A stretch of 64,000 nucleotides of DNA from Ranitomeya imitator (lineage: Eukaryota), in NCBI RefSeq assembly GCF_032444005.1, contig NC_091288.1, positions 201,748,001 through 201,812,000 of the forward strand, read 5' to 3'. Shown one piece after another: positions 5,083-64,000 of this stretch. Position 1 is the first letter of the stretch. Every line of letters begins with the position of its first letter. The notes under the pieces are model-generated. The model made no database searches and had not been told where the DNA came from. It was given only the letters and a program-made list of their open reading frames with translations. A program made the translations under genes and the position numbers.

Positions 5083-6981
5083 CAGTTGAAATCAAACTAT
5101 ATAAAATGACACTACATGTGTTCCTCAATATCTGACATAGAGAGAGAGACAGAGAGAGAGAGGAAGAGAGCATCTGAGTGAATTAGTGTTACGGAACTGC
5201 AACACGAGACTAGGGTAGAAGGGGGAAAACTGACCCTGCATTATGAATAGGCTGATACCCTACATGTCTTGTGAATAGACCCACCAACGATCCTAGGCTA
5301 ATCTTAAGCGAAGACCTATAGATAGGGGGAAGGGGGTCCCTAAAAGATATAATGACTGGGTACAAAAAATGGGTCACCTCCTAGTAGAAAACAAAGAGAA
5401 GGCTGCAGATACCAACTGAAAACAGAAACTAAGAGTAGCAGAACCAAAGGTCCCAGTACTGCACTAATTAAACACACAGAAGACTAAGCAAAGGACCAAG
5501 CCAGAACTCAAGCAGATTAGCACTGTTGTCCAGCAAGGGCTGGGAGGCAGGTGCTGGTTAATAAACAGTTATACAAACACCTGACCCAAGACAAACCCAG
5601 CACCAGAGTAAAAAGACCAGCTGCCAGAACACCGTAAGAAAATGGCGGATATTCACAAACTAAACAGATACTAACAATTAGAGACACACTTGTGGATGTA
5701 TTTTAATGCACACCTGAAACACACTGCTTCTTTGTGTAGCATCATGGGAAAGTCTCAAGAAATCAGCCAAGATATCAAGAAGAGAATGGTGGACTTGCAC
5801 AAGTCTGGCTCATCCTTGGGTACAATTACAAGATACCTGAAGGTGCCTCATTAATTTCTACAAACAATTATACAAAAGTACAAACAAGATGGGAATGTCC
5901 AGCCATCATACCGCTCAGGAAGGAGATGGGTTCTGTGTCCCAGAAATTAACGTGCTTTGGTCAGACATGTGCATATAAACAAGGACAAAAGCAAAAGACC
6001 TTGTGAAGATGATGGTTGAAGCTGGTAAGATTGTGTCAATAGCCACAGTGAAATAAGTACTGTATCAACATGGGCTGAAAGGCCACTCTGCCAGGAAGAA
6101 CCCATTACTCCAAAGAAACATAAAAAAAGCCAGATTAATGTTTGCAAATGAACACAGGAACAAAAACCATCATTACTGGAGACATGTCCTGTGGTCTGAT
6201 GAAACTAAAATTGAACTTTCTGGGCATAATGACCATCGTTACGTTTGGAGGAAAAAGGGAGAAGCTTGGAAGCCTAAGAACGCCATCCCAACTATGAAAC
6301 ACAGTGGTAGCAGCATCATGTTGTGGGGTTATTTTGCTGTAGGAGGGACTGGTGGACGTCACAAAATAGATGGCATCATGAGAAAAGAAGATTATGTAGA
6401 AATACTGAAGCAACATCTCAAGACATCAGCCAGGAAGTTAAAGCTTGGGTGGAAATGTGTTTTCCAAAGGGCAATGACCAGAAGCACACTGCCAAAATGT
6501 TAACAAAGTGGCTTAAGGATAACAAAGTCAATGTTTTGGATTTGGAGTTGCCATCACAAAGCCCTGATCTCAATCCTATTGAAAATGTATGGGCAAAGTT
6601 GAAAAGGAGGGTGCGAGCAAAGGCAACCTACAAACCTCGATCAGTTACACCAGCTTTGTCAGGAGGAATAGGCCCAAATTCTGACCAACTATTGTGAGAA
6701 GCTTGTGGAAGGACATCCAACACATTTCGCCCAAGTCATTCAGTTAAGAACAATGATACCAAATACTAGTGAAATTGATGAAAACGTGTGACTTTGCAGT
6801 AAGTAAAAAAAATGCCTTAAAACATTCTCTCATTATTCTGGAATTTGGCAAATATTAATAATTATGGTAATCCTAATTGACCTAAAACAGGAAAGGTTTA
6901 TTCTGATTTAATGTCAGATATTGAGAAAAACATGTAGGCGTGCCATTTTATATAGTGGATGGAAACTTCTGGTTTCAACTG
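5083..6981 (+). mobile_element. Degenerate Tc1/mariner transposon
   Basis: TA|CAGTTGAAA...TTTCAACTG|TA ends; frameshifted transposase from MGKSQEISQD (5744) with WSDETKIEL and [11 protein letters not shown] motifs. Confidence 0.9.
5187..5639. mobile_element. Possible solo LTR inserted in the Tc1 left end
   Basis: TGTTACGG start and CCGTAAGA end resemble TG..CA LTR termini; interrupts the Tc1 inverted repeat. No target duplication seen. Confidence 0.35.
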
Positions 6982-23835: not shown

Positions 23836-26481
<2,646 letters not shown>

Positions 26482-28796: not shown

Positions 28797-29640
28797 ATGC
28801 AGGCTGAAAGGTGGCAGATGAGGTTTAACAATGATAAATGTACGGTTATGCACATAGGAAGAAGGAATCAATATCACCATTACACGCTGAACGGGAAACC
28901 ACTGGGTAAATCTGACAGGGAGAAGGACTTGGGGATCCTAGTTAATGATAAACTTACCTGGAGCAGCCAGTGCCAGGCAGCAGCTGCCAAGGCAAACAGG
29001 ATCATGGGGTGCATTAAAAGAGGTCTGGATACACATGATGAGAGCATTATACTGCCTCTGTACAAATCCCTAGTTAGACCGCACATGGCGTACTGTGTCC
29101 AGTTTTGGGCACCGGTGCTCAGGAAGGATATAATGGAACTAGAGAGAGTACAAAGGAGGGCAACAAGATTAATAAAGGGAATGGGAGAACTACAATACCC
29201 AGATAGATTAGCGAAATTAGGATTATTTAGTCTAGCAAAAAGACGACTGAGGGGCGATCTAATAACCATGTATAAGTATATAAGGGGACAATACAAATAT
29301 CTCGCTGAGGATCTGTTTATACCAAGGAAGGTGGCGGGCACAAGGGGGCATTCTTTGCGTCTGGAAGAGAGAAGGTTTTTCCACCAACATAGAAGAGGAT
29401 TCTTTACTGTTAGGGCAGTGAGAATCTGGAATTGCTTGCCTGAAGAGGTGGTGATGGCGAACTCAGTCGTGGGGTTCAAGAGAGGCCTGATTGTCTTCCT
29501 GGAGCAGAACAATATTATATCATACAATTATTAGGTTCTGTAGAAGGACGTAGATCTGGGGATTTATTATGATGGCATATAGGCTGAACTGGATGGACAA
29601 ATGTCTTTTTTCGGCCTTACTAACTATGTTACTATGTTAC
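28797..29640 (+). mobile_element. CR1 3' fragment (same young family as 14302-17258)
   Basis: 245-aa ORF nearly identical to the C-terminus of the 926-aa ORF; (ACTATGTT)n tail. Confidence 0.95.
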
Positions 29641-30019
29641 ATAGTTATTAATGTTGAAGGAAGACTTTAAGGCTGGTTTCACATTTGCGTTTTTTGCCGC
29701 TGCGTTTAAACGCATGCGTTTTATTTTTCCTATATTTAACATTAAAAACGCATGCATTTTTTTTGTACGCGTTTGGCTGCGTTTGACGACACATGCGTTG
29801 TTTCTATGCTTGTGTTTTTTTTTTTCGGAAATGCAACATGTAGTAATTTCTAGAGGAGTTTTTTTGCCGCAAAAAAACATATTGCTGTCTATGTAAACAC
29901 ATGCGTTTTTAAGCACATGCGTTTGGTTGCGTTTTTAAACGCATGCGTTTCAATAGAAAAAAAACAAGTCTACACACTGATAAGCCACCCCCCACCATCA
30001 AGGTGATAAAGGGATCAAA

Positions 30020-30352
30020 ACCCTAACCCTAGCCCTAACCCTACCCCTAAGGATCCAAACCCTAACCCTACCCCTAACCATAACCCTAGGGATCCAAACC
30101 CTAGCCATAACCATAACCCTAGGGATCCAAACCCTAACCCTAGCCCTAACCCTTGCCCTAACCCTACCTCTAACCCTAGGGATCCAAACCCTAACCCTAG
30201 CCCTAACCCTACCCCTAAGGCTAGGGATCCAAACCCTAACCCTACCCCTAACCCTAGGGATCCAAACCCTAACCCTAGCCCTAACCCTTGCCCTAACCCT
30301 ACCTCTAACCCTAGGGATCCAAACCCTAACCCTAGCCCTAACCCTACCCCTA
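30020..30352. repeat. Degenerate (CCCTAA)n telomere-like block
   Basis: CCCTAA/CCCTAG/CCCTAC hexamers punctuated by GGGATCCAAA. Confidence 0.85.
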
Positions 30353-31109
30353 AGGCTAGTTTCACATTTGCGTTTAAAAACACAGCGTTTAAAACGCATC
30401 TGCGGGTGGTGAAAAAACGCATGTAAACGCATACAAACGCTGCGGTTTCGTATGCGGTAAAAAAATTATGCGTTTTTATGCGTTTACATGCGTTTTTTCC
30501 TGCGTTTGCGTTTTTGATACGCATGATGAGAAATTTCACAAGAGAAAAATCAAGATCCAGACACCGCCAATGGGACTACAGAGGGCGTGTGACATGACTC
30601 TGTGGACCAAAATATGGAAAAATTGTAGCTCTCAAAATGTGGTAACGCAAAAAATATTTTTTGGAATAAAAAGCGTCTTTAGTGTGTGACATCTGACAAT
30701 CATAAAAATCAACTAGAAAACCCACTATAAATTGAAATGGCTATGGTTAGGATTAGGGTTAGGCTGGTTTCACATTTGTGTTTTTTGCCGCAGTGTTTGT
30801 ACCACATATAAACGCATGCGTCGTGTTTTTCTATATTTAACATTAAAAACGCATGTGTTTTTTTGTTCTCGTTTTGCCGCGTTTGACGACGCATGCGTCT
30901 TTTTGTCGCTTGCGGCTTGGCGCGGAAATGCAACATGTAGTAATTTCTAGAGGTGTCGCCAGGAAACACATGCGTTCGATTGTGCACGGTTTGCGTAAAA
31001 AAAAAGCATTGCTGTCTATGTAAACACATGCATTTTTAAGCACATGCGTTTGGTTGTGTTTTTGAACGCATGCGTTTCAATAGAGAAAAACAAGTCTAGA
31101 CACTGCTAA

Positions 31110-31693
31110 GCCACCCCCCCACCATCAAGGTGATAAAGGGATCCAAACCTTAACCCTAACCCACCATCAAGGTGATAAAGTGATCCAAGCCCTAACTCTA
31201 AACCTAACATTAACCCTAGCCATAAGCCACCATCAAGGTGATAAAGGGATCCAAAACCTAACCCTAGTCCTAGCTCTAACCCTAAGCCACCATCAAGGTG
31301 ATAAAGGGATCCAAACCCTAACCCTAGCCCTAACCATAACCCTAGCCCTAACCCTATCCCTAACCCTAAGTCACCATGAAGGTGATAAAGGGATCCAAAC
31401 CTTAACCCTAACCCACCATCAAGGTGATAAAGTGATCCAAACCCTAACTCTAAACCTAACACTAACCCTAGCCATAAGCCACCATCAAGGTGATAAAGGG
31501 ATCCAAAACCTAACCCTAGTCCTAGCTCTAACCCTAAGCCACCATCAAGGTGATAAAGGGATCCAAACCCTAACCCTAACCCTAGCCCTAACCATAACCC
31601 TAGCCCTAACCCTAACCCTATCCCTAACCCTAAGTCACCATGAAGGTGATAAAGGGATCCAAACTCTAACCCTAACCCTAGCCCTAACCCTAA
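31110..31693. repeat. Degenerate (CCCTAA)n telomere-like block with higher-order unit
   Basis: CCACCATCAAGGTGATAAAGGGATCCAAA alternating with CCCTAA runs. Confidence 0.85.
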
Positions 31694-32244: not shown

Positions 32245-34790
32245 GTGTGTTTCAATGTCTGACAGCCACCGAGGTGCGTTTTGATATCCAATAGCCGTGG
32301 CAGTGCATTTCGAGGTTCGACAGCTACAGCAGTGCGTTTTGAGTTCCGACGGCCACTGTGGCGCATTTCGAGGTCTACGAGACGCAGAGATGCGTAATCG
32401 AGGTCAGACAGCCACGGCGGTGCATTTTGAGGTCCAACAGACGTGCAGGTCCATTTTGAGGTCTGACAGCCGCAGTGACACGTTTTGAGGTCTGACAGCC
32501 AAGACACTGTTTTTTGAGTCCCGACAGCCGCGGCAGAGCACTTCGAGATCTGACAGCAGAGACAGTGCGTTTCAAGGTACAACAGCCGCAGCAGCACATA
32601 AGTACAGCAGCCGTGGTTGCACTTTTTGATGTCCGACAGACGCAGAGGTGCGTTTCGCTGATGCACATTTCAAAGTCCGATAGCAACAGAGGTGTGTTTC
32701 AAAATACAACAGCCACAGCGGCGCATTTCAAGGTCCGAAAGCCGCGGAGGTACATTTTGAGGTCCAACAGCCTCAGTGTCGTGTTTCATGGTCCAACAGC
32801 CGAAGAGTTACATTTTGAGGTCTGACAGCTGCAGTGTCCTGTTTCAAGGTCAAAAACCACAGCAGTGCATTTCAATATACAACAGCCGCAGGGATGCGCT
32901 TCAAGGTCCGACAGCCACATAGGTGCATTTCTAGGCTCGACAGCCGCGCCAACACGTTTCCAGGTCCGACAGCCGTGGCGGTATGTTTCAATGTCCTACA
33001 GCAATGGAGGTGCATTTCTAGGTTCGATAGCAGCGGCGACACATTACAAGGTCCGACAGCCGCAGCAGCAGGCGGTGGATTTCAATGTCCGACATCCGCA
33101 ATGGTGCATTTCTAGGTCTCTAGCTAGGCAGCTGTGGTTGTGCTTTTTGAGATTCGACAGCTGTGGTGGCGTTTTTCGACTTCCGACAGCCACAGGGAAG
33201 CGTTTTGAGTTCTGACAGCCACAGGGAAGCGTTTTGAGGTCCGGCAGCCAAGACAACGCGGTTTGAGGTCCGACAGCTGCGGCGGTGCGTTTAGAGGTCC
33301 GACAGCTGCCGCGGTGCTTATTGAGGTCCGACAGTCGTGCAGGACCATTTTGAGGTCAGGCAGCTGCGATGGCGCGTTTCGACATCCGACACCCACGAAG
33401 GTCTGTTTTGAGGTCAGACAGCCACGGAGGTGTGTTTCGAGGTCCGACAGCCGCAGCGTGTTTTGAGGTCCGACAGCTGTGGCAGCCGCAATCGCATATG
33501 TGAATTTTGATTTCTGACAGCTGCGATGGTGCGTTTCAAGGTCCGACAGCAGCGGGTGCACATTTTGAAGTACGACAGCGGCGGTTGCGCTTTTCGGGGT
33601 CCAACAGCCACAGAGGTGCATTTCGATGTCTGACAGCCGCAGTGATGCATTTTGAGGTCCGACAGTCGCCACAACGCATTTTAAGGTCAGACAGCTGCCG
33701 TGGTGCGTTTTGAGGTCAGACAGCCGCAGATATGCGTTTTAACCAACAGCCGCGGCGGCGCGCTTCAAGATCTAGCAGTACAGTGAGTTTCAATGTACAA
33801 CAGCCGCAGCAGCGCTTTTTGAAGTACGACAGCTGTGGTTGCACATTTCAAGGTCCGACAACCGCGGAGGTGGGTTTTGATCTCCAACATCCGCTGCTGC
33901 ATGTTTTGAAGTCCGACAGCCACGGAGGTGCTCTTCGAGGTCCGACAGCTGTGACGGTGCATTTCGAGGTCTGAAAGCCATGGAGGTGCATTTCGATGTC
34001 CGACAGCCGTTTGGATGCGTTTTGAGGTCCGACAGCCACAGCGGCGTGGTTTGAGGTCCAACAGCCACAGAGGTAAGTTTCCAGGTCCGACAGCAATGGC
34101 GGCGTGGTTTGAGGTCCGACAGCCACAGAAGTGCGATTCGAGGTCCGACAGCCACGGAGGTGCGTTTCGATGTCCGACAGCGGCAGGGATGCAATTGGAG
34201 GTCCAACAACTGCAGCAGCGCTTTTTGATGTCTGACAGCCGAGGCGGTGCGATTCGACGTCCGACAGTTGTGGTGGTGTTTTCAAGATCCAACAACCTTG
34301 CTACGTTACGAGGTTCAACTGCCGTGTAGGTGCATTTCGATGTCTGACAGCCGTGGTGGTGCGATTCGAAGTTCGATAGCCGTGCCAGTGCGTTTTGTGG
34401 TCCGACAGCAGCAGAGATGCGTTTCAAAGTCCGACAGCCTCGGAGGTGCGTTACGATGTCCGACAGCCGCATAGGTGCATTTTGATGTCCGACAGTCGCA
34501 TAGTGAATTTCGATTTCTGACAGCTGCAAAGGCGCATTTCAAGGTCCCACAGCAGCGGGTGCACGTTTCGAGGTACGACAGCGGCGGCTGCGCGTTTCGG
34601 GGTCCAGCAGCCACATAGGTGCATTTCGATGTACGACAGCTGCATGGATGCGTTTTGAGGTCCGACAGTCGCGGTGGTGCGTATTGAGGTCAGACAGCCG
34701 CGGCGGTGCGTATTGAGGTCAGACAGCCGCGGCGGTGCGTATTGAGGTCAGACAGCCGCGGCGGTGCATATTGAGGTCAGACAGCCACAG
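32245..34790. repeat. ~31-bp degenerate satellite (core TTTGAGGTCCGACAGCCGC)
   Basis: Dozens of diverged tandem units; relics also at ~35250-35345 and ~56420-56610. Confidence 0.9.
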
Positions 34791-36171
34791 AGACGCATTT
34801 TACCCTAATTAATGACAGCGGATACGTCTTTTAACTGACCTGAGATATAAGAGAATAGCCTCCACATACAGGTGACAATCCAGCAGCTGTCGGCTGGTAC
34901 ACTATAGCTGACAACTTGCTGTATCAGCCATGATCACAGTTTGCACCATCCAAATCTGTTTAACCCCTTAGATGCTTCTGTCAATAGTTACTATTTCATT
35001 ATAAATGGTTAACAAAGTATGAGGGCTTCCTCTTTATCCCAATTGGTGCCCTCAGATCATGATTTTGTGGTCCTGATGTTTGCCATAGCTATTCACGACC
35101 AAATAGTGACCTTAGAGCCTGACAGCTATAGTAATCTAGAGACATTTAGGTGGTAAAAATGCACATTTTCATTTGTGTCATGCCACTTTGCATTAATTCC
35201 TGAAAAGCACCTGAAGAGTTAATAAACTGCTTACCGGCTGCGCTTTTCGAAGTAGGACTGTGGCTGCTGCACATTTGAGGTCCGATAGACATGGAAGTGC
35301 ATTTCAATGTTTGACAGCCTCGGAGGCGTGTTTCGAGGTCCTGTCATGTAGATATATCTCCAGTTTGTGCAGTGTATGGGGGGGGGGGGGGGACACAGAT
35401 GGGGGCTTCGCTCCCTGCAGTTCTTGTCCCGTAAATAAAGATCCAGTGTGTGCAGAGTATGGGGGTCACAGGTGTTGGTTCTGTTCCCTACAGCTCCTGT
35501 CCTGTATATGTATATACACCGCGTATACATTGTGTGCAGTGTATGGGGGACACAGCGCTGCCGGGGCCTGGGGTGAAGGTGCCGCATCTGTGGATACTCT
35601 GGAAAAGAAAAGATGCTGGAAAACGGCACGTAAGGAGTTAAACGGGAGAGGAAATACATCCATGTACATCACTGAAGGCTGAGCGTTACCAAGGTTTCTG
35701 CTCATTGTCTGATCACAGAATCCGTTGGTGGGGGGAGGGGGAATTTTAATTTCCCGCTCATAATCTCTGGAGGATTATTACCGGTCACTGCCGATAGCGG
35801 AGATCACAATCCGGTCACACCCGGAACAGCGCGGAGTCCTGTCCTCCAGAGCCGCCGCACACGGGATCGTCCTCCGAGAGAAGGCGCCGTCACTGATGTG
35901 GAGGAGAATCACCCGCCCGGTCCCGATACTCCGGGACCTGCTAACTACATGTAGACCTCAGCGCGGAGTATCAGACACTGAGGAGGGGACATTTCCTGCG
36001 AGCTTGGCAGACGACACTCCCACCTGAGGGGTCTGAGACTTCATGTGGGATTCATCTCCTATTATTCTGTGGATATGTGCACCAACAATGGCGGCAATGG
36101 TGTATGTACCATCAGCCTCATGTGAGGACCCCGAGATAGGCGGCGCCGGCTCTTGTGGTGACGGTGTGGGT

Positions 36172-38359: not shown

Positions 38360-38458
38360 GCAGTGTGGGTGGCTCTTATAGTGAGGGTGTAGGTGGCTCT
38401 TATAGGGAGGGTGTGGGTGGCTCTTATAGGGAGGGTGTGGGTGGCTCTTAGAAGAGCC
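38360..38458 (-). terminator. H2B 3' stem-loop (38443-38458) followed by three 24-bp repeats of its 3' arm
   Basis: GGCTCTTCTAAGAGCC then (ACCCACACCCTCCCTATAAGAGCC)x3. Confidence 0.9.
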
Positions 38459-38483: not shown

Positions 38484-38768
38484 NNNNNNNNNNNNNNNNN
38501 NNNNNNNNNNNNNNNNNNNNNNNNNNNNNNNNNNNNNNNNNNNNNNNNNNNNNNNNNNNNNNNNNNNNNNNNNNNNNNNNNNNNNNNNNNNNNNNNNNNN
38601 NNNNNNNNNNNNNNNNNNNNNNNNNNNNNNNNNNNNNNNNNNNNNNNNNNNNNNNNNNNNNNNNNNNNNNNNNNNNNNNNNNNNNNNNNNNNNNNNNNNN
38701 NNNNNNNNNNNNNNNNNNNNNNNNNNNNNNNNNNNNNNNNNNNNNNNNNNNNNNNNNNNNNNNNNNNN
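38484..38768. other. Assembly gap covering most of H2B
   Basis: Run of N. Confidence 0.99.
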
Positions 38769-39368: not shown

Positions 39369-41507
39369 GATGTACTAGATTTTCTCGGCACCACCATCCG
39401 CATGTGGGGTGCTGCTGTAATCCCGTTCATTATCCTCATTTTTCCTCTGCACATTCCCACATCCAGCCAAGTGATCGCGGGGTCCAGTATACTCATCAGC
39501 ATTGCCAATACTTCGATATGTAGCAAAGAAGGAGTGGTGTAAAAATTTGGGGGGCATTTTGAGGGCAACCCAAACGTTGTGCCCCACCAAAAAATGCCCC
39601 GGTTGACCCAAAACATTCTGAAAAAAATTACCACACACTCTTATAGTGTTCCTCTACACACCCTGAGAATTTGTGGTCGACAGACCCAAACCGGGCTTAG
39701 CAGTGACCTTGCGCACCACAGACTTCAATGGGCAGGGTCACTTTGGGGAGTCTCTGCTCAGCCCAGTTTGTGGCTATCATCAACCCCAAATGTTCAGGGT
39801 GTGTAGCTCTAGTGGACCAGTGCTGTAAAAATTTAGGGGGCATTTTGAGATGACCCAAAACATATGCCCCTCCCCACCCCCAAACTTCTGAACAAATTAC
39901 CCGACACTCTTGAATTGTTCCTCTACACACCCTGAACATTTGGGGTCGATGGGCACAAACTAGGCTGAGCAGTGACCCTGCGCGCGATAGGCTTCCATGG
40001 GCAGGGCAGCTTTGGGGGGTAACTGCTCAGCACAGATTGGGGCTATCGACTTCAAATTTTCATAGTGTGTAGAGGAATAATTCATGAGTGTGGGCTATTT
40101 TTTTCTGAATACCTTGCTCTATATACTGTACACACTGCTCTAGATATTGTACACTGCTCTATATACTGTACACACTGCTCTATATATTGTATACTGCTCT
40201 ATATACTGTACACTGATTTACATACTGTACCCTCTCCTGTATATACTGTACACACTGCTACTGTACACTCTGGTCTATATACTGTGTACTCTGCTGTATA
40301 TACTGTACACACTGCTCTATATACTGTACGCTCTGGTCTATAATACTGTACACTGCTGTATATACTGTTCACACTGCTCTATATACTGTACACTGCTCTA
40401 AATACTGTACACACTGCTCTATATACTGTATATACTGTATATATTGCTGTATATATACTGTATATACTGTATATATACTGTATATATTGCTGTATATACT
40501 GTACAATCTGTTGCACAGTCTGTATACACTGCTGTATATACTGTATACTCTGCTCTATATACTGTACACACGGCACTATGCTATACACTGCTCTATATAC
40601 TGTACACTCTGGTCTATAAACTGGACACTGCTGTATATACTGTACTCTGCTTTATATACTGTACACACTGTTGTATATACTGTAGACTCTCCTCTATTAT
40701 CTGTGACACTTATTACACTGCTGATCTGGGCTGTGCAGATGTGATGTTGTGCACTATATATACTATATACAGCTGTGTTCTCTGTGTAGACGCTGGATTT
40801 TGTGTCTCCGCTTTTCTCCCAATATTCCCCTTTTGCACAACAGTGGGGGTCACATACATGCATGAATATTTCAGTTTTCTCCCGAGATGTTCATGTGTTT
40901 GGTTGGGGAGTCGCGCTGTGCAGCTGTCGCCTCATCATCAGAGCTCTTCCCTCCATTACAGGCCGCAGCGGTCACAGCTTCACACTGGGTAAGACACGAT
41001 ATCAGGCAGGTGATTGCAATCAGCCCCCGATATGGATCATCTACTGATGTGGAACACGTGTCCCCCCAATACTCTGCACATACGGGGTAGAGTGATATCA
41101 CAGGTCAGGGAGGTGGCAGTCAGCGGAGGCCGTCGCCTGTGTTACCCTTCTGGGTTCTCAGCAGCTCCAGCTGGTCCCCACATCGTACAATCAGCTTCCT
41201 GTGCGATAGACACTGGAGTAAAGATCCCTGTGATGGTGACAAGAGCCGGGAATAGGAGGAACGAGCTCCCGCAGCAGATTTATCTACCCGGACACACAGT
41301 GATGTGCAGATCGGGAGGACGGCGGCGATGATCCCGGGATTTCCTCTCCGCAATTTCTAGGCGTTTCCACTAGTGACGGCTACAAACGGTCGGTGGAGAT
41401 GATGGAGAAGGAGAAGCGACGGAGGAATCGCGCTCTGCTGTCCGGTGTTAGCCGGTAAAGGGTTTTTATCCCGGGCAGGGAAGCACAAGGGGAGAGCGGA
41501 GCTTCAC
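39369..41507 (+). repeat. Inverted, more diverged copy of the H1 upstream spacer (50513-53107)
   Basis: Colinear reverse-complement match up to GCTTCAC, just before the H1 core promoter. Confidence 0.9.
40100..40700. repeat. AT-rich satellite (TATATACTGTACAC)n variants
   Basis: Low-complexity tandem array; inverted copies at 51290-51970 and 63730-64000. Confidence 0.9.
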
Positions 41508-41559
41508 TACCTGCCAGCCCTTATGCCGAAGTGATCAGATTCTATTCTGTGTAATCCGC

Positions 41560-41620
41560 TCATGTAACCAATATTGGCGGAGGCTGCGGGGAGTTATAGA
41601 TTTCATGTCTTATAAAAGCA
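41560..41620 (+). promoter_or_regulatory. Histone-style promoter motifs without a downstream ORF
   Basis: CCAATATTGG 41568-41577, GGCGGG, TATAAAA 41611-41617. Confidence 0.45.
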
Positions 41621-41877
41621 GCTCAGCGGGTTATCGATTGTGCAGAGGTGTCAGTATGTGCATGTATATATGTGTATGTACATACCCCATACACCCTTGT
41701 ATCATTTACCAAATAGTACCGTAACAATGAACAGCATCAGCGGTTCCAGCTCCATAATGCAAACAGGGGGCAGCACAATAAGATGGGGGCAAACACCAGT
41801 ATATGTCAGGACTCGGGAGACTTAATGTTAGTCAGATAGGAGCTCTGCACTTCCGCAGCCATTTAATCTCATTCAAT

Positions 41878-42692
41878 GAGCCACCACCTCCTCCCCGCAG
41901 AGCTGTATGATCAGTGCCACCACCTTCTCCCAACAGAGCTGTATGATCAGTGCCACCACCTCCTCCTCGCAGAGCTGTATGATCAGTGCCACCACCTCCT
42001 CCCCGCAGAGCTGTATGATCAGAGCAACCACCTTCTCCCCACAGAGCTGTATGATCAGTGCCATCACCCACTCCCCGCAGAGCTGTATGATCAGTGCCAC
42101 CACCTCCTCGCAGAGCTGTATGATCAGTGCCACCACCTCCTCCCCACGGAACTGTATGATCAGTGCCACCGCCTCCTCCCCGCAGAGCTGTATGATCAGT
42201 GCCACCACCTCCTCCTCGCAGAGCTGTATGATCAGTGCCACCACCTCCTCCCCGCAGAGCTGTATGATCAGAGCAACCACCTTCTCCCCACAGAGCTGTA
42301 TGATCAGTGCCATCACCCACTCCCCGCAGAGCTGTATGATCAGTGCCACCACCTCCTCGCAGAGCTGTATGATCAGTGCCACCACCTCCTCCCCACGGAA
42401 CTGTATGATCAGTGCCACCGCCTCCTCCCCGCAGAGCTGTATGATCAGTGCCACCACCTCCTCCTCCCTGCAGAGCTGTATGATCAGTGCCACCACCTCC
42501 TCCTCCCTGCAGAGCTGTATGATCAGTGCCACCACCTCCTCCTCCCCGCAGAGCTGTATGATCAGTGCCACTACCTCCTCCCCGCAGAGCTGTATGATCA
42601 GAGCAACCACTTCCTCCCCAGCAGAGCTATATGATCAGTGCCACCACCTTCTCCCCACAGAGCTGTATGATCAGTGCCACCACCTTCTCCCC
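41878..42692 (+). repeat. 36-bp HDE-containing array, orphan inverted copy (~22 units)
   Basis: (GCCACCACCTCCTCCCCGCAGAGCTGTATGATCAGT)n; internal 249-bp duplication. Confidence 0.95.
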
Positions 42693-44992
42693 TTCATTGT
42701 CTGTTCTAGTTATATGGAGATAATGGTCCTTGTATGCAATGTCCAGTAATGATTCCCGAGAGCAGCAGACGCTCCCTGAGGACCCATCTATGCCCAGCAG
42801 AGGACACTCATAGCCAGAGACCGGTACCGGGAGTTCCCTCTCCTCACGCTGCAGAACAGCAGAGCGGGCTGGGGACTAGTGACCGGTGTCACCCGCACTC
42901 AGAGCAGCCTGCAGCTGAAGGAGGAATCCCCCCTAACAAGGAATGTGCCAGTGACACCCTGACAGCGGAGAAAGGACAGGCAGAACACGCAGCAGCCGGG
43001 ACTCTCCTCGCTGCGAGCTCCGGTACACAGAGGGGGGCAGGAAGTTCCGGGCTCAGGAGACGGGGACATCACCTGCCATGGGGTGTAAGGGGATGATCTG
43101 TAGCGCTGCATCTAATTATTGGGGGAAGCTCATTATCACTTACCAGACGCATTCAGGTGACATTAATGAGCCGCAGGCAGCGAGGCCGCCGAGTACTGTC
43201 CTCAATGGGGAGCAGCATTATAACAATGAGAATAACTTGCCCCCACTGTGATTTTCTTGTTATACGAATTGACGGTTTACTTTATTTTAATAACACTTGT
43301 ATTGCAAATGACAGAGATCATAAAACTTAGATATAACCTGTTTCTTCATATGAAGATTTACATTCACAGAACATTTATTATCTTCCCGTAGAAGATAATG
43401 ACAACAGCTTAGATGGATAAAACCATAAGCAATGGAGAAAGAACACAGAGAAAGAATTCCAAAACCTGTCATTCCTCAGTTGCTGGAGCTGTAGAATGAT
43501 GGGCTGCACAGATTTTAGAGGATCATCTCTTCATTGTAATAGCTGAATCATTGGAATAGTGATATCCAGCAGGAGACATATGTCAGGACTAATAGTAACA
43601 ATGCAACAATGAGGCAGACTGAGGTGTGCACTGACTTGCAGAGAAGCAGCAGTAGTCTGAAGAAGCTGACAATTAAGAACAGCTGTGTACAACCATCTCC
43701 TATCTGTAAGCCGCTAGGAAATTAATTGTTAAACACTTATCTGCTTTTGGAGGCAAAAAAAGACGCTAAATGCTCCTGAGTAACCTCATATCTTGTATTT
43801 TACTAACATGTTTTTCTTTTCCCTTATTTAGGCTATTCAATTTTAGTTACCATATTACATTTCTCCTGTAACTCTGACCTGCTTGGACTGTTGTCTTTTC
43901 CTACACTTTTATCATATTTGATCCTTTTTCTTACCCTATTAAAATTTATATTTACCGTCCCTCTTTTATTTATGTCTGATATAAAACTGTTTGTGTGTAT
44001 TGATTATACTTTAAAAAACAAAAAAAACTACAAATCGCTCTGAGTTCAGTGGCTTTTTATTCCAGCTCTTGCTCCATGGATCGTCCGATACTTTGTGGTC
44101 TCGTATTAATTGAAGTTTATGATTCTCACTTTGTTTCTCCAAAGAAAACATTTATTTATTAAATGACTCCACGGTGATTTGGAAGGTGATTACAGGAGAT
44201 TGCTGTTGGTGGACTTTATATCACATCACAAGAAGCTGCGGAAACTACAACAAGCGGGAAATTCAAAATTCCTACCCGCCCTGTGTGCAGCCAATCTGCA
44301 GAGGAAGGGGAGGGGCTAACGTTAACCGTTTAGGAACGTGGAGTTCCCGCTGAGTGGCTGATGAATTTTCCGTTTTTTGTCTTTCTGTAGTTTCAGGACG
44401 ATCAGATGTCCGAAAAGTGTTTGTGTGGAGCGATCAATGGTCACTTGTGTCCCATACAGGAGTTTATATATTTCCAGGATCAAGGGAGAAGTATCCGCTT
44501 TCTATAATAGAAGGTGCAGAACTTTGCGACTATAGTGACTCCATCAGACCAGCAATATTCAGTGCAGGGAATATACAGAAACGAGGTCATGCAGATTAGA
44601 AACAATCTTAAAATTGGGGTGGGGAGTCTAAAATGCTGATTAATGTTATCTAGGGAAACCTACTATAGAACTGTAAACTCCTGCAGTGAGAAGAATAACA
44701 GGAAATATCGCAGAGTAGATGGGCGCCCTGTATGGTCACATATGAGCATTCTTGCCGCATCCAGTCCCATCACACATCAATATCTTTGCGGATTATTCTA
44801 GTATTGGTCCTGATCAGGGCGCACAGGGAAGGGGGGATGAGATTATTACATTTCCGCATATATGTATTTACTCCCCCACACACTGCAGACTGAGCCGCGA
44901 GTGACCCAGAGACCAGATGTTACCGAGCACAAGTGATCCCTCCGGGCATAATTATATGTGAGGAATGAGCTCGTCTTGAGGGAGGATTTGGT

Positions 44993-45067
44993 GGCTCTGA
45001 AAAGAGCCTTTGTGTTGTGGTCGGTGCCGGGGCAGATCTAAGCTCTCTCCCCACGGATCCGGCGGGC
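44993..45067 (-). pseudogene. H3: H3 3' relic (ARRIRGERA stop + 3' UTR + intact stem-loop)
   Basis: Matches 46886-46960; stem-loop at 44993-45008. Confidence 0.9.
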
Positions 45068-46930: not shown

Positions 46931-47341
<411 letters not shown>

Positions 47342-47749
47342 GGCTCCGTATAGACGTGTCGGGCACAGATGTGATAAGAGGAGCGGCGGGAGCAGGGTAT
47401 TTATGCTCCGGGGCGCGTCCTCATTGGTCTCTGGGAAACACGCCCCCTGCGCTCCACTGGCTCTTTCATGAAATAAAGTGGCCAATAAGGGTTGATTTGT
47501 TTGACCAGTCATTGTTATTATTCCCGCCCACTAATCCCGCCCCTGAAGTCCCCGCCTCTTCCGTGATGCGTCTGTCCTCAGATCACTCATTTGCCGCTTG
47601 CTGGAGCAGCTGATGTATTTGCGTTCAAATGTCCCCGTGTATAGCGCTGTACAGTGCAGCTCCCGCAATATCGACAGATCACACAAACCCCCCATCCTGA
47701 GACTGCGCCCAGCATCAGTTATATTACAAACATTAGAAGTCCGAGAACT

Positions 47750-49647
47750 AATCATACAGCTCTGCGGGGAGGAGGCGGTGGCACTGATCATACAGCTCTG
47801 CGGGGAGGAGGTAGTGGCTCTGATCATACAGCTCTGCGGGGAGAATGTGATGGCTCTGATCATACAGCTCTGCTGGGGAGGAGGTGGTGGCTCTGATCAT
47901 ACAGCTCTGTGGGGAGAAGGTGGTTGCTCTGATCATACAGCTCTGCGGGGAGGAGGTAGTGGCACTGATAATACAGCTCTGCGGGGAGGAGGTAGTGGCA
48001 CTGATCATACAGCTCTGTGGGGAGAAGGTGGTTGCTCTGATCATACAGCTCTGCGAGGAGGAGGTGATGGCACTGATCATACAGCTCTGCGGGGAGGAGG
48101 TGGTGGCTCTGATCATACAGCTCTGCGGGGAGGAGGCGGTGGCACTGATCATACAGCTCTGTGGGGAGGAGGTGGTGGCTCTGATCATACAGCTCTGCGG
48201 GGAGGAGGTGGTGGCTCTGATCATACAGCTCTGTGGGGAGAAGGTGGTGGCACTGATCAAACAGCTCTGCTGGGGAGGAGGTGGCTCTGATCATACAGCT
48301 CTGTGGGGAGAGGTGGTGGCACTGATCATACAGCTCTGCTGGGGAGGAGGTGGTTGCTCTGATCATACAGCTCTGCGGGGAGGAGGTAGTGGCACTGATC
48401 ATACAGCTCTGCGGGGAGGAGGTAGTGGCTCTGATCATACAGCTCTGCGGGGAGAATGTGATGGCTCTGATCATACAGCTCTGCTGGGGAGGAGGTGGTG
48501 GCTCTGATCATACAGCTCTGTGGGGAGAAGGTGGTTGCTCTGATCATACAGCTCTGCGGGGAGGAGGTGGTGGCACTGATCATACAGCTCTGTGGGGAGA
48601 AGGTGGTTGCTCTGATCATACAGCTCTGCGGGGAGGAGGTGGTGGCACTGATCATACAGCTCTGCGGGGAGGAGGTGGTGGCACTGATCATACAGCTCTG
48701 CGAGGAGGAGGTAGTGGCACTGATCATACAGCTCTGCGGGGAGGAGGTGGTGGCACTGATCATACAGCTCTGCGAGGAGGAGGTGGTGGCACTGATCATA
48801 CAGCTCTGCGGGGAGTGGGTGATGGCACTGATCATACAGCTCTGCTGGGAGAAGGTGGTGGCACTGATCAAACAGCTCTGCTGGGGAGGAGGTGGCTCTG
48901 ATCATACAGCTCTGTGGGGAGAGGTGGTGGCACTGATCATACAGCTCTGCTGGGGAGGAGGTGGTTGCTCTGATCATACAGCTCTGCGGGGAGGAGGTAG
49001 TGGCACTGATCATACAGCTCTGCGGGGAGGAGGTAGTGGCTCTGATCATACAGCTCTGCGGGGAGAATGTGATGGCTCTGATCATACAGCTCTGCTGGGG
49101 AGGAGGTGGTGGCTCTGATCATACAGCTCTGTGGGGAGAAGGTGGTTGCTCTGATCATACAGCTCTGCGGGGAGGAGGTAGTGGCACTGATAATACAGCT
49201 CTGCGGGGAGGAGGTAGTGGCACTGATCATACAGCTCTGTGGGGAGAAGGTGGTTGCTCTGATCATACAGCTCTGCGAGGAGGAGGTGATGGCACTGATC
49301 ATACAGCTCTGCGGGGAGGAGGTGGTGGCACTGATCATACAGCTCTGTGGGGAGAAGGTGGTTGCTCTGATCATACAGCTCTGCGGGGAGGAGGTGGTGG
49401 CACTGATCATACAGCTCTGCGGGGAGGAGGTGGTGGCACTGATCATACAGCTCTGCGAGGAGGAGGTAGTGGCACTGATCATACAGCTCTGCGGGGAGGA
49501 GGTGGTGGCACTGATCATACAGCTCTGCGAGGAGGTGGTGGCACTGATCATACAGCTCTGCGGGGAGTGGGTGATGGCACTGATCATACAGCTCTGCTGG
49601 GAGGAGGTGTTGGCACTGATCATACAGCTCTGCGGGGAGGAGGTGGT
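47750..49647 (-). repeat. 36-bp HDE-containing array directly 3' of H1 copy 1 (~50 units)
   Basis: Begins at the stem-loop; 611-bp higher-order period (GAGAATG variant at 47841, 48452, 49063). Confidence 0.97.
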
Positions 49648-49663
49648 GGCTCTTATAAGAGCC
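49648..49663 (-). terminator. Histone 3' stem-loop (H1 copy 1)
   Basis: GGCTCTTATAAGAGCC-ACCA, then AGAGCTGTA 16 nt downstream. Confidence 0.93.
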
Positions 49664-49691: not shown

Positions 49692-50330
49692 TTATTTCTT
49701 AGCCGCGGGCTTCTTGGCTTTCGCAGCCTTCTTAGCCGGACTCTTGGCGGGTTTGGCCGCCTTCTTAGCCGGACTCTTCGTCACCTTCTTGGGCTTGGGA
49801 GCGGCTTTCGGCTTTTTGGGGCTCTTGGCCGCTTTCTTGGCAGCTGCGGGCTTCTTGGCCTTTTTCGGGCTCTTCTTGGCCGCGGTCGGAGCCTTCTTGG
49901 GCTTCTTCGGAGATTTGGCGGCTTTCTTGGCAGCAGCGGGTTTCTTAGGTTTGGCCGCAGCTGCTGGCTTCTTCTTGGCCACTTTGTCCTTCGTCTCCTG
50001 CTTCTTGTTCAGCTTGAAGGACCCGGAGGCGCCGCTGCCTTTCACCTGGAGGAGGGCGCCCTTGGTGACCAGAGACTTGACGGCCAGCTTCAGGCGGCTG
50101 TTGTTCTTCTCTACATCGTATCCTCCGGCAGACAGAGCCTTCTTCAGGGCGGCCAGAGACACCCCGCTGCGCTCCTTGGAGGCGGACACGGCTTTCACGA
50201 TCAGCTCGGAGACGCTGGGGCCGGAGGGTTTATTGCTCTTCTTGGCAGCAGATTTCTTCGGCTGCTTCTTGGATTTGGCGGCCGGTTCTGCGGGAGGGGG
50301 AGCGGCGGCTGGCGCGGTCTCTGCCATCAT
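49692..50330 (-). CDS. H1: Linker histone H1 (replication-dependent type), copy 1
   Basis: (M)[10 protein letters not shown]...[30 protein letters not shown]...[13 protein letters not shown]-rich tail; GC box and two CCAAT upstream. Confidence 0.97.
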
Positions 50331-51289: not shown

Positions 51290-51970
51290 ATAGAGGAGAG
51301 GGTACAGTATATACAGCAGAGTGTACAGTATATAGAGCAGTGTATAGTATATACAGCAGTGTACAGTATATAGAGCAGTGTATAGTATAGTGCGGTGTGT
51401 ACAGTATATAGAGCGGTGTGTGCAGTATATACAGCAGAGTACACTGTATGTAGACCAGAGTGTACAGTATATACAGCAGAGTACACAGTATATAGACCAG
51501 AGTGTACAGTATACAGAGCAGTGTGTGCAGTATATGCAGCAGAGTACACAGTATATAGAGCAGTGTACAGTATATACAGCAGTGTACAGTATTTACAGCA
51601 ATGTACAGTAAATAGACCAGAGTGTACAGTATATAGAGCAGTGTACAGTAGTGCGGTGTGTGCAGTATATAGAGCAGAGTATACAGTATATACAGCAGAG
51701 TACAGTATATAGAGCAGAGTGCACAGTATAAAGAGCTGTGTGTACAGTATATACAGGAGAGGGTACAGTACATAGAGCAGTGTGTACAGTATATAGAGCA
51801 CTGTACACAGTATATACAGCAGTGTGTACAGTATGTAGAGGAGAGTGTAGAGTATGTACAGCAGTGTGTACAGTATATAGATCATTGTGTGCATTATATA
51901 GAGCAAAGCGTTCAGTATATAGAGCAGTGTGCAGTATAGTGCGGTGTATATAGAGCAGTGTATACAGTAT
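51290..51970. repeat. AT-rich satellite (GTGTACAGTATATA)n variants
   Basis: Low-complexity tandem array in the H1 upstream spacer. Confidence 0.9.
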
Positions 51971-59834: not shown

Positions 59835-60434
<600 letters not shown>

Positions 60435-60653
60435 CTAATCCCGCCCCTGAAGTCCCCGCCTCTTCCGTGATGCGTCTGTCCTCAGATCACTCATTTGCCG
60501 CTTGCTGGAGCAGCTGATGTATTTGCGTTCAAATGTCCCCGTGTATAGCGCTGTACAGTGCAGCTCCCGCAATATCGACAGATCACACAAACCCCCCATC
60601 CTGAGACTGCGCCCAGCATCAGTTATATTACAAACATTAGAAGTCCGAGAACT

Positions 60654-62087
60654 AATCATACAGCTCTGCGGGGAGGAGGCGGTGGCACTGATCATACAGC
60701 TCTGCGGGGAGGAGGTAGTGGCTCTGATCATACAGCTCTGCGGGGAGAATGTGATGGCTCTGATCATACAGCTCTGCTGGGGAGGAGGTGGTGGCTCTGA
60801 TCATACAGCTCTGTGGGGAGAAGGTGGTTGCTCTGATCATACAGCTCTGCGGGGAGGAGGTAGTGGCACTGATAATACAGCTCTGCGGGGAGGAGGTAGT
60901 GGCACTGATCATACAGCTCTGTGGGGAGAAGGTGGTTGCTCTGATCATACAGCTCTGCGAGGAGGAGGTGATGGCACTGATCATACAGCTCTGCGGGGAG
61001 GAGGTGGTGGCACTGATCATACAGCTCTGTGGGGAGAAGGTGGTTGCTCTGATCATACAGCTCTGCGGGGAGGAGGTGGTGGCACTGATCATACAGCTCT
61101 GCGGGGAGGAGGTGGTGGCACTGATCATACAGCTCTGCGAGGAGGAGGTAGTGGCACTGATCATACAGCTCTGCGGGGAGGAGGTGGTGGCACTGATCAT
61201 ACAGCTCTGCGAGGAGGAGGTGGTGGCACTGATCATACAGCTCTGCGGGGAGTGGGTGATGGCACTGATCATACAGCTCTGCTGGGAGAAGGTGGTGGCA
61301 CTGATCAAACAGCTCTGCTGGGGAGGAGGTGGCTCTGATCATACAGCTCTGTGGGGAGAGGTGGTGGCACTGATCATACAGCTCTGCTGGGGAGGAGGTG
61401 GTTGCTCTGATCATACAGCTCTGCGGGGAGGAGGTAGTGGCACTGATCATACAGCTCTGCGGGGAGGAGGTAGTGGCTCTGATCATACAGCTCTGCGGGG
61501 AGAATGTGATGGCTCTGATCATACAGCTCTGCTGGGGAGGAGGTGGTGGCTCTGATCATACAGCTCTGTGGGGAGAAGGTGGTTGCTCTGATCATACAGC
61601 TCTGCGGGGAGGAGGTAGTGGCACTGATAATACAGCTCTGCGGGGAGGAGGTAGTGGCACTGATCATACAGCTCTGTGGGGAGAAGGTGGTTGCTCTGAT
61701 CATACAGCTCTGCGAGGAGGAGGTGATGGCACTGATCATACAGCTCTGCGGGGAGGAGGTGGTGGCACTGATCATACAGCTCTGTGGGGAGAAGGTGGTT
61801 GCTCTGATCATACAGCTCTGCGGGGAGGAGGTGGTGGCACTGATCATACAGCTCTGCGGGGAGGAGGTGGTGGCACTGATCATACAGCTCTGCGAGGAGG
61901 AGGTAGTGGCACTGATCATACAGCTCTGCGGGGAGGAGGTGGTGGCACTGATCATACAGCTCTGCGAGGAGGAGGTGGTGGCACTGATCATACAGCTCTG
62001 CGGGGAGTGGGTGATGGCACTGATCATACAGCTCTGCTGGGAGGAGGTGTTGGCACTGATCATACAGCTCTGCGGGGAGGAGGTGGT
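60654..62087 (-). repeat. 36-bp HDE-containing array directly 3' of H1 copy 2 (~40 units)
   Basis: Same unit and flanks as 47750-49647; 755-bp higher-order period. Confidence 0.97.
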
Positions 62088-62103
62088 GGCTCTTATAAGA
62101 GCC
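62088..62103 (-). terminator. Histone 3' stem-loop (H1 copy 2)
   Basis: GGCTCTTATAAGAGCC-ACCA. Confidence 0.93.
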
Positions 62104-62131: not shown

Positions 62132-62770
62132 TTATTTCTTAGCCGCGGGCTTCTTGGCTTTCGCAGCCTTCTTAGCCGGACTCTTGGCGGGTTTGGCCGC
62201 CTTCTTAGCCGGACTCTTCGTCACCTTCTTGGGCTTGGGAGCGGCTTTCGGCTTTTTGGGGCTCTTGGCCGCTTTCTTGGCAGCTGCGGGCTTCTTGGCC
62301 TTTTTCGGGCTCTTCTTGGCCGCGGTCGGAGCCTTCTTGGGCTTCTTCGGAGATTTGGCGGCTTTCTTGGCAGCAGCGGGTTTCTTAGGTTTGGCCGCAG
62401 CTGCTGGCTTCTTCTTGGCCACTTTGTCCTTCGTCTCCTGCTTCTTGTTCAGCTTGAAGGACCCGGAGGCGCCGCTGCCCTTCACCTGGAGGAGGGCGCC
62501 CTTGGTGACCAGAGACTTGACGGCCAGCTTCAGGCGGCTGTTGTTCTTCTCTACATCGTATCCTCCGGCAGACAGAGCCTTCTTCAGGGCGGCCAGAGAC
62601 ACCCCGCTGCGCTCCTTGGAGGCGGACACGGCTTTCACGATCAGCTCGGAGACGCTGGGGCCGGAGGGTTTATTGCTCTTCTTGGCAGCAGATTTCTTCG
62701 GCTGCTTCTTGGATTTGGCGGCCGGTTCTGCGGGAGGGGGAGCGGCGGCTGGCGCGGTCTCTGCCATCAT
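62132..62770 (-). CDS. H1: Linker histone H1, copy 2
   Basis: Protein identical to copy 1. Confidence 0.97.
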
Positions 62771-64000
62771 GTGCTGCGGAAAAACAAGATGAAAATATTT
62801 CCTGATAGGAAGGAAAACACTGAGGCCGGAGCTGGAGGCGCCTGTTATATGTACAGGCTTACTGCGCACTGATTGGCTGCTGAGCTGCACCGTTCTGAGC
62901 TTCTATTGGCTGACACTGGACATAAACCCCGCCTCCTCCCAGCTGAGTCCGGGTGAAGCACCGCTCTCTCCTTGTGCTTCCCTGCCCGGGATAAAAGCCC
63001 TTTACCGGCTAACACCGGACAGCAGAGCGCGCTTCCTCCATCGCCTCTCCTTCTCCAACATCTCCACCGGCCATTTGTAGCCGTCACTAGCAGAGATGCC
63101 GGGAAAGAGCGGAGAACAAATCCCGGGATCATCGCCGCCGTCCTCCCGATCTGCACCTCACTGTGTATCCGGGGAGATAAATCTGCTGCGGGAGCTCGTT
63201 CCTCCTATTCCCGGCTCTTGTCACCATCACAGGGATCTTTACTCCAATGTCTATCGTACAGGGAGCTGATTGTACGATGTGGGGACGAGCTGGAGCTGCT
63301 GAGAACCCAGAAGGGTAACACAGGCGACGGCCTCCGCTGACTGCCACCTCCCTGACCTGTGGTGTCACTGTACCCCGTATGTGCAGAGGATTGGGGGGAC
63401 ACGTGTTCCACACCAGTAGATGATCCACATCGGTGGCTGAGTGCAATCACCTGCCTGATATCTTGTCTTAGTGGTGGGAAAGAGCTCTGATGAGGCGACA
63501 GCTGCACAGTGCGACTCCCCAACCAAACACATGAACATCTCAGGGGAGAAAACTGAAATATTAACGGATGTATATGACCCCCACTATTATGCAAAAGGGG
63601 AATATTGGGAGAAGAGCGGAGACACAAAATCCAGCGTCTACACAGAGAACACAGCTGTATATAGTATATATAGTGCACAGCATCACATCTGCACAGCCCA
63701 GATCAGCAGTGTAATAAGTGCCACTGATAATAGAGGAGAGGGTACAGTATATACAGCAGAGTGTACAGTATATACAGCAGTGTATAGTATATACAGCAGT
63801 GTACAGTATATAGAGCAGTGTATAGTATAGTGCGGTGTGTACAGTATATAGAGCGGTGTGTGCAGTATATACAGCAGAGTACACTGTATGTAGACCAGAG
63901 TGTACAGTATATACAGCAGAGTACACAGTATATAGACCAGAGTGTACAGTATACAGAGCAGTGTGTGCAGTATATGCAGCAGAGTACACAGTATATAGAG

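Follow-up and report, generated by a model that had tools for sequence, protein, structure and literature searches.

The window analysed here, a stretch of 64,000 nucleotides (nt) of the dendrobatid (poison) frog Ranitomeya imitator (contig NC_091288.1, assembly GCF_032444005.1), contains a histone gene cluster in which every histone gene is located on the minus strand. Read along that strand from high coordinates, the order is H1 (62770-62132), a tandem array named A2, H3, H2A, H4, a second H1 (50330-49692), a tandem array named A1, H3 and H4. Both arrays consist of a 36-nt unit repeated head to tail. The repeat begins inside the 3′ arm of the H1 stem-loop, and the unit starts with the last three bases of the stem (GCC). 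The duplicated segment spans these bases, ACCA, a pyrimidine spacer, an element complementary to U7 small nuclear RNA (the histone downstream element, HDE) and 8 nt beyond it. Outside the arrays the two H1-array-H3 cluster units are 99.5-100% identical by segment-wise alignment; BLAST values of 97-98.6% were ruled out, the array being misaligned there. The protein of H1 copy a is 96-98% identical to H1 proteins of Ranitomeya variabilis and R. imitator, and the exact 212-residue protein is recorded in assembly GCA_032444005.1.

As shown in Table 1, the two H1-linked arrays differ in length. Over the listed intervals Tandem Repeats Finder detected a period of 36 nt with 53.0 copies (89% matches) in A1 and 40.0 copies (90% matches) in A2. 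Unit-by-unit parsing gave 53 and 40 units, each of 33-37 nt, which agrees with the about 50 and about 40 repeats that a preliminary description of this DNA had placed behind the two H1 genes. Its inventory stood for these two arrays and missed a third, A3, with 22.5 copies in Tandem Repeats Finder and 22 parsed units. A3 runs in the orientation opposite to A1 and A2, and neither an H1 gene nor a stem-loop is located upstream of it. The 16-mer AGAGCTGTATGATCAG, the core of the unit, occurs 115 times at no more than two mismatches, against 0.10 occurrences expected by chance.

On the sense (-) strand of H1, the stem-loop GGCTCTTATAAGAGCC (49648-49663) is directly followed by ACCACCTCCTCCCCGC-AGAGCTGTA-TGATCAGT, the order of stem-loop, cleavage site and HDE that had been read there before. 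Unit 1 has all of its parts in standard order and spacing and is a member of the canonical family of histone 3′ signals. The stem-loop is restricted to this unit: in interior units the 5′ arm is always missing, and no more of the stem than the 3′ arm (AGAGCC or GTGCC) is left. A scan with Rfam model RF00032 gave one stem-loop per histone gene and no match inside any array at E≤1. The stem-loop of H1 copy a scored 29.9 bits (E=1.6e-4), under the gathering score of 34.

Table 1. Positions of the arrays, histone genes and 3′ signals in the window.
Feature	Position	Strand	Remarks
Array A1	47747..49650	-	53 units in multi-unit blocks; reaches to about 400 nt before the H3 start codon
Array A2	60651..62090	-	40 units; equals A1 save for a 13-unit block and one 3-nt indel
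Orphan array A3	41880..42692	+	22 units, 7-unit higher-order repeat; inside an inverted partial copy of the cluster unit
Unit 1 of A1	49615..49650	-	Last 3 nt of the stem, ACCA, 12-nt pyrimidine spacer, HDE AGAGCTGTA, then TGATCAGT
H1 copy a	49692..50330	-	Open reading frame, 212 amino acids plus stop; Pfam Linker_histone, E=8e-23
Stem-loop of H1 copy a	49648..49663	-	GGCTCT-TATA-AGAGCC; 31 nt after the stop codon; 6-bp stem, 4-nt loop
H1 copy b	62132..62770	-	Open reading frame; one substitution relative to copy a
Stem-loop of H1 copy b	62088..62103	-	From sequence and Rfam scan
H3 copy a	46931..47340	-	Next same-strand gene downstream of A1; in-frame TAA at codon 10
H2B stem-loop and 24-nt mini-array	38363..38458	-	About 3.7 units of ACCCA, spacer and AAGAGCC; stem-loop at 38443-38458

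The 115 units were sorted into 30 types, so that each array could be written as a string. A1 reads ARENAKACBALBMDFGHIDOPQSEJAKACBCFGHIDOPQXCYZALBMDFGHIT, A2 reads AREJAKACBALBMDFGHIDOPQSEJAKACBALBMDFGHIT and A3 reads AaJCBENUVJCBENUVWWbDcd. The multi-unit blocks ALBMDFGHI, DOPQ and EJAKACB recur, and A3 has a 7-unit higher-order repeat of its own (249-nt period in Tandem Repeats Finder). The 13-unit block and the 3-nt indel are the only differences between A1 and A2; no substitution was found in 1437 aligned nt, and the flanks are diverged by 0.0-0.5%. Length therefore changes faster than sequence, and together with the recurring blocks this is the mark of unequal exchange or slippage. How long an array is and which units it contains depend on unequal exchange or slippage involving multi-unit blocks, and the array is carried along when the cluster unit is duplicated. 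The features tested for a minisatellite are all present: units within 10-100 nt, higher-order blocks, and copy number that changes faster than substitutions accumulate.

In the inverted partial copy of the cluster unit, 39369-41507 aligns with 53107-50513 at about 93% identity, and homology to the H1 unit stops at 41507. A unique sequence of 370 nt (41508-41877) then stands in place of the H1 promoter, gene and stem-loop, and A3 starts thereafter. Although promoter, gene and stem-loop are gone, 19 of the 22 units of A3 keep an intact HDE.

The mini-array at H2B arose separately and is a second case in which a histone 3′ signal was amplified. The period of 24 nt is the distance from the stem 3′ arm AAGAGCC to an identical, HDE-like AAGAGCC, a direct repeat built into the signal. 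The segment from stem 3′ arm to HDE has thus been amplified at two different genes of the cluster. The genomic region is repeat-prone, since other tandem repeats, with these arrays excluded, make up a further 10.6% of the window.

Within the units, the HDE AGAGCTGTA is intact in 51 of 53 copies in A1, 39 of 40 in A2 and 19 of 22 in A3, 109 of 115 in total, and all five indel events fall within the low-complexity pyrimidine spacer. To this extent the earlier statement that the HDE is kept while the spacer varies was accurate. The conservation pattern is not specific to U7 complementarity, however: TGATCAG has no pairing with mammalian U7 and yet varies as little as the HDE (intact in 109 of 115 units; 22 of 22 in A3). 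Variation is greatest in ACCA, which 69 of the 115 units keep intact, and its distance from the HDE is altered in 21 by the spacer indels. The most polymorphic site of the unit is the CpG immediately before the HDE, which, with the confinement of indels to the spacer, fits ordinary mutation pressure; ordinary mutation bias accounts for part of the pattern of conserved HDE and variable spacer. When distinct substitution events were counted instead of unit copies, 4 of 22 events fell in the 9-nt HDE (9 of 36 positions; P=0.32, no depletion) and 6 of 22 in the 16-nt core (P=0.08). Units with a damaged HDE number 3 of 22 in A3 and 3 of 93 in the H1-linked arrays, a difference that is not significant (P=0.08).

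The 5′ end of human and mouse U7 reads (C/A)AGUGUUACAGCUCUUUU (PMC7026596). The HDE is the exact complement of UACAGCUCU in this U7 sequence, with which AGAGCUGUA pairs over 9 contiguous base pairs, so that the perfect 9-nt complement of the preliminary description was borne out and is present in nearly every unit. Pairing was scored throughout against human/mouse U7, from which the frog's own U7 5′ end may differ; Rfam detected no U7 gene within the 64-kb window. The predicted U7 duplex of the standard unit has an energy of -14.0 kcal/mol against -7.2 ± 2.1 kcal/mol for shuffled units. For the 3′ ends of H2A, H2B, H3 and H4 in the window the predicted values range from -6.8 to -12.8 kcal/mol, and H1 unit 1 gives the strongest, -15.1 kcal/mol. 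The HDE begins 12 nt past ACCA in the unit, compared with 10-13 nt in the neighbouring H2A, H2B and H4 genes, and in nearly every unit the U7 complement is as far from an ACCA-like site as it is in unit 1.

Array RNA of the sense strand is predicted to be less structured than shuffled sequences (z=+1.25), so that the U7 sites would be accessible. Periodic RNA structure was sought in the array and not found: the sense strand folds worse than shuffles and the antisense strand no better. In mammalian extracts, processing free of SLBP occurs only with a strong U7 duplex (16 bp in the example), and weaker substrates need SLBP (PMC7026596). The 9-bp duplex of the array units would fall in the SLBP-requiring class as defined in those extracts. 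The antisense (+) strand of every A1 and A2 unit carries TACAGCTCT, identical in sequence to the U7 positions that pair with HDEs; that upstream-antisense transcription from the H3 promoter would yield RNA with dozens of U7-like guide motifs is pure speculation.

A further copy was found in a separate R. imitator assembly. The H1 gene model P0004 (204 amino acids, a contiguous gene of 615 nt on a 35.5-kb contig) has lost its stop codon and reads through the stem-loop (GSYKS) and unit 1 (HHLLPAELYDQC) into a second unit in another frame (PPPPPRRAV). It is independent confirmation that another H1 copy is followed by two or more units, although not of how long that array is. H1 and H3 are separated by 883 nt in R. 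variabilis and by 1042 nt in Phyllobates terribilis, compared with 448 nt in the window once the array is discounted; these gaps leave room for shorter arrays, which, on gene spacing only, is suggestive and not proof. The C-terminal tail of the R. variabilis protein P0002 was rejected as a sign of a single-copy signal, its gene model being spliced over 13.6 kb. Two reading frames of the array, searched as proteins in a collection built from assemblies, gave no matches, and the exact 36-nt unit was absent from the scanned metagenome contigs. Tandem arrays that hold the 9-mer three times were found at at least 120 loci, none with a histone stem-loop or histone gene nearby, and were set aside as unrelated satellites and not relatives of the H1 array. 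As the 9-mer recurs in so many of them, its presence within a repeat is not special in itself.

Other features of the cluster were recorded beside the arrays. Codon 10 of H3 copy a (47312-47314) is TAA, where copy b (59835-60245) has AAA (Lys9); this is the sole coding difference, and copy a is either a very young pseudogene or affected by a base error. An orphan H3 3′ fragment (44968-45067, minus strand) has an intact stem-loop (Rfam, 33.7 bits) and 95.6% identity to H3 3′ ends; it is joined to no H3 coding sequence and has a different downstream element. N letters (285 nt, 38484-38768) make up most of the H2B coding sequence, and no H2B gene lies between H2A and H3 in cluster unit 2 (53-64 kb). 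A 21-nt minisatellite of about 29-32 copies precedes each H1 by about 1 kb and is also present in the inverted partial unit (40115-40710, 51290-51938 and 63730-64000); it represents a second fast-evolving array belonging to the cluster unit. The inverted partial copy (39369-42692) includes this 21-nt array and the H1 upstream region, and its unique 370-nt piece contains a CArG-like CCAATATTGG (41568-41577) and TATAAAAG (41611-41618), both directed toward A3.

Elsewhere in the window, tracts of interstitial telomere-like (AACCCT)n, with higher-order repeats of 42-135 nt between them, occupy 30019-31693, and a degenerate tandem repeat with a unit of 29 nt (63-72% matches, higher-order periods of 58 and 87 nt) extends over about 2.5 kb at 32300-34792. 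An intact 926-residue open reading frame of a non-long-terminal-repeat retrotransposon with endonuclease and reverse-transcriptase domains (Pfam RVT_1, E=2e-32) lies at 14413-17193 on the minus strand, and a 245-residue fragment of a near-identical element at 28797-29534 on the plus strand. Broken remnants of Tc1/mariner-type transposases (Pfam HTH_Tnp_Tc3_2, HTH_SB and DDE_3) were found at 24788-25912 (-) and 6138-6697 (+).

In our estimate there is about an even chance that the array is a minisatellite born by tandem duplication of the H1 3′ processing signal and maintained by unequal exchange. The segment carrying the signal would have been duplicated in tandem again and again. The canonical layout suggests that unit 1, which has the stem-loop, would alone be the working cleavage signal, and the remaining 39-52 units would be copies without one. 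Because nearly every unit keeps the 9-bp match, the canonical spacing and unstructured RNA, a polymerase passing the first site would transcribe further weak U7 landing sites, and the array would serve at most as a low-efficiency backup or decoy. The array of H1 signals is real; a function for it is putative, and those proposed in the preliminary description (U7 scaffold, termination ladder, locus-body nucleator, sponge) are only weakly backed. The array may be merely a fast-evolving repeat and not a purpose-built device, and a selected function is no more likely than a neutral origin.

Several observations speak against this reading, one of them against pure neutrality. Variants common to A3 and the H1-linked arrays were classed as old (n=11) and array-private variants as young (n=11). 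None of the old and six of the young variants fall in the 16-nt core (Fisher P=0.012); the same contrast gives P=0.026 for the HDE alone and is not significant for TGATCAG alone (P=0.14), all of this on small numbers of variants and, since A1 and A2 are near-duplicates, on effectively only two independent arrays. Core variants reach at most two copies per array and others up to 23 (Mann-Whitney P=0.018). That old variants avoid the core and young ones do not indicates that mutations strike the core at a normal rate but fail to spread. Variants that fail to spread hint at purifying selection at the level of the array, and amplification biased to units with an intact core would match them too. 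The unit also has the best predicted U7 match of any histone 3′ end in the window. Moreover, removal of the array would leave only about 450 nt between the H1 3′ end and the H3 start codon, while other intergenic gaps here measure 2-4 kb, so that a backup terminator would be useful at this place. We consider it unlikely that the array is a selected multivalent U7 landing pad, in which read-through H1 RNA with 40-53 accessible HDEs would ensure cleavage and termination before the H3 promoter or would concentrate U7 and FLASH, the core being preserved by array-level selection. In the event that the U7 5′ end of this frog pairs with TGAUCAG as well, an extended HDE working without SLBP would span all 16 nt of the core.

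The main rival, tentative and somewhat unlikely, is a selected fail-safe ladder for processing and termination. Polymerases that missed the first site would meet 40-50 more U7 sites before the H3 promoter, which lies about 0.4 kb past the array, and one cleavage anywhere would let the 5′-3′ exonuclease catch the polymerase before it. H1 and H3 are arranged in tandem on the same strand, and histone processing is coupled to termination (PMC4896052). The 9-bp match in 109 of 115 units with its predicted energy (-14.0 against -7.2 ± 2.1 kcal/mol), a spacing from the ACCA-like site equal to that of unit 1 and within the 10-13 nt of neighbouring genes, the unstructured sense RNA (z=+1.25) and the old variants kept out of the core (P=0.012) are consistent with it. 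However, the interior units are without a stem-loop and weak duplexes need SLBP (PMC7026596); ACCA is not conserved and the spacing is altered in 21 units. Nor does a ladder explain why TGATCAG, for which U7 offers no rationale, is equally conserved, or why the orphan array A3 persists without H1. Another reading is that the core acts at the DNA level, either as a minisatellite core driving exchange or slippage or as a protein-binding boundary or enhancer for the H3 promoter: AGAGCTGTATGATCAG is conserved as a block beyond the U7 match, and A3 keeps TGATCAG in 22 of 22 units without H1. Two short palindromes, AGCT and TGATCA, lie within the core. Single RNA sites that are redundant should be under very weak selection, and biased amplification would need no fitness effect. 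We nevertheless hold a DNA-level role to be very unlikely, as the shortage of old variants in TGATCAG taken by itself is not significant (P=0.14), no match to a known factor or motif emerged, no search for one having been made, and the core is a derived HDE whose origin requires no DNA-level function.

It is highly improbable, in our judgement, that nascent array RNA forms a multivalent scaffold of U7 small nuclear ribonucleoprotein (snRNP) which would concentrate U7, FLASH and Lsm11 and seed or enlarge the histone locus body, or that it acts as a U7 sponge. Known nucleation of the Drosophila locus body is driven by promoter DNA and not by 3′ RNA, which counts against such a scaffold. After cleavage at unit 1, array RNA would be a downstream product, normally degraded, and no exact unit was found in the sequence collections searched. 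Each transcript would nonetheless offer 40-53 accessible predicted U7 sites; concentration of processing factors in the Drosophila locus body improves processing (PMC4896052), and satellites are transcribed by read-through on newt lampbrush chromosomes (PMC2114352). The amphibian oocyte cytology brought forward in the preliminary description comes from Xenopus and newts and is background from amphibians other than Ranitomeya. An assembly artefact, in which the assembler inflated or duplicated a short repeat, is hardly credible. Tandem arrays are difficult to assemble and the cluster units are 99.5-100% identical outside the arrays, yet the three arrays differ in length and their block structure is internally consistent. 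P0004, from an independent R. imitator assembly, runs through the stem-loop into units 1 and 2, and the H1-to-H3 spacing recorded for GCA_032444005.1, 1887 nt, matches the second cluster unit of the window.

An iterated HDE array behind H1 genes is apparently new to the literature. Literature searches for repeated HDEs or for repeats behind histone stem-loops found no description, and a survey from 2026, covering histone gene organisation across over 250 species, mentions neither HDEs nor satellites. If the units are functional, the locus would be a construct provided by nature in which a single nascent RNA carries dozens of U7 sites. It would allow direct tests of whether U7 snRNP acts without a stem-loop in vivo when sites are multivalent, of the coupling of histone 3′ cleavage to RNA polymerase II termination between closely packed genes, and of whether nascent RNA helps build the histone locus body. 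If the array is neutral, it would show that the direct repeat of stem 3′ arm and HDE makes histone 3′ ends prone to tandem amplification, as happened twice in this cluster, and that concerted evolution alone can keep a perfect small-RNA-binding motif intact while it is iterated.

Known systems resemble the array in part. In Drosophila, cryptic poly(A) sites downstream of histone genes are used when U7 processing fails (PMC4896052). There, as in the frog, redundant downstream 3′-end signals could rescue missed processing and termination; the Drosophila backups are single poly(A) signals, whereas the frog array consists of iterated putative U7 sites, with no AATAAA evident in or just after it. 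Multi-site RNA sponges are exemplified by circular CDR1as with its many miR-7 sites. They share with the array many tandem sites complementary to one small RNA on one (in the frog, predicted) transcript, and they differ in that the frog RNA is expected to be a short-lived downstream cleavage product. GC-rich minisatellites of the Jeffreys type have a higher-order repeat structure and a conserved core. The array is like them in its 36-nt unit, purine/pyrimidine strand bias, multi-unit blocks, fast length change and conserved core with variable remainder; unlike theirs, the frog unit derives from an RNA-processing signal and is anchored with base-pair precision to the 3′ stem-loop of a gene.

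Among amphibians, newt histone genes reportedly read through into flanking satellite 1, according to the Gall laboratory. Read-through transcription of satellite 2 on newt lampbrush chromosomes has been described by the same laboratory (PMC2114352). Both animals have tandem repeats immediately downstream of histone genes, where failed 3′ processing would lead the polymerase. The satellites of the newt have no sequence relationship with the processing signal; in Ranitomeya the repeat is the signal itself. The closest likeness is to the canonical vertebrate histone 3′ signal of stem-loop, ACCCA and U7-binding HDE, which unit 1 matches in order, in spacing and in the pairing of AGAGCTGTA with UACAGCUCU. 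What sets the frog locus apart is that the segment of cleavage site and HDE is repeated 40-53 times without the stem-loop, whereas known genes carry one HDE.

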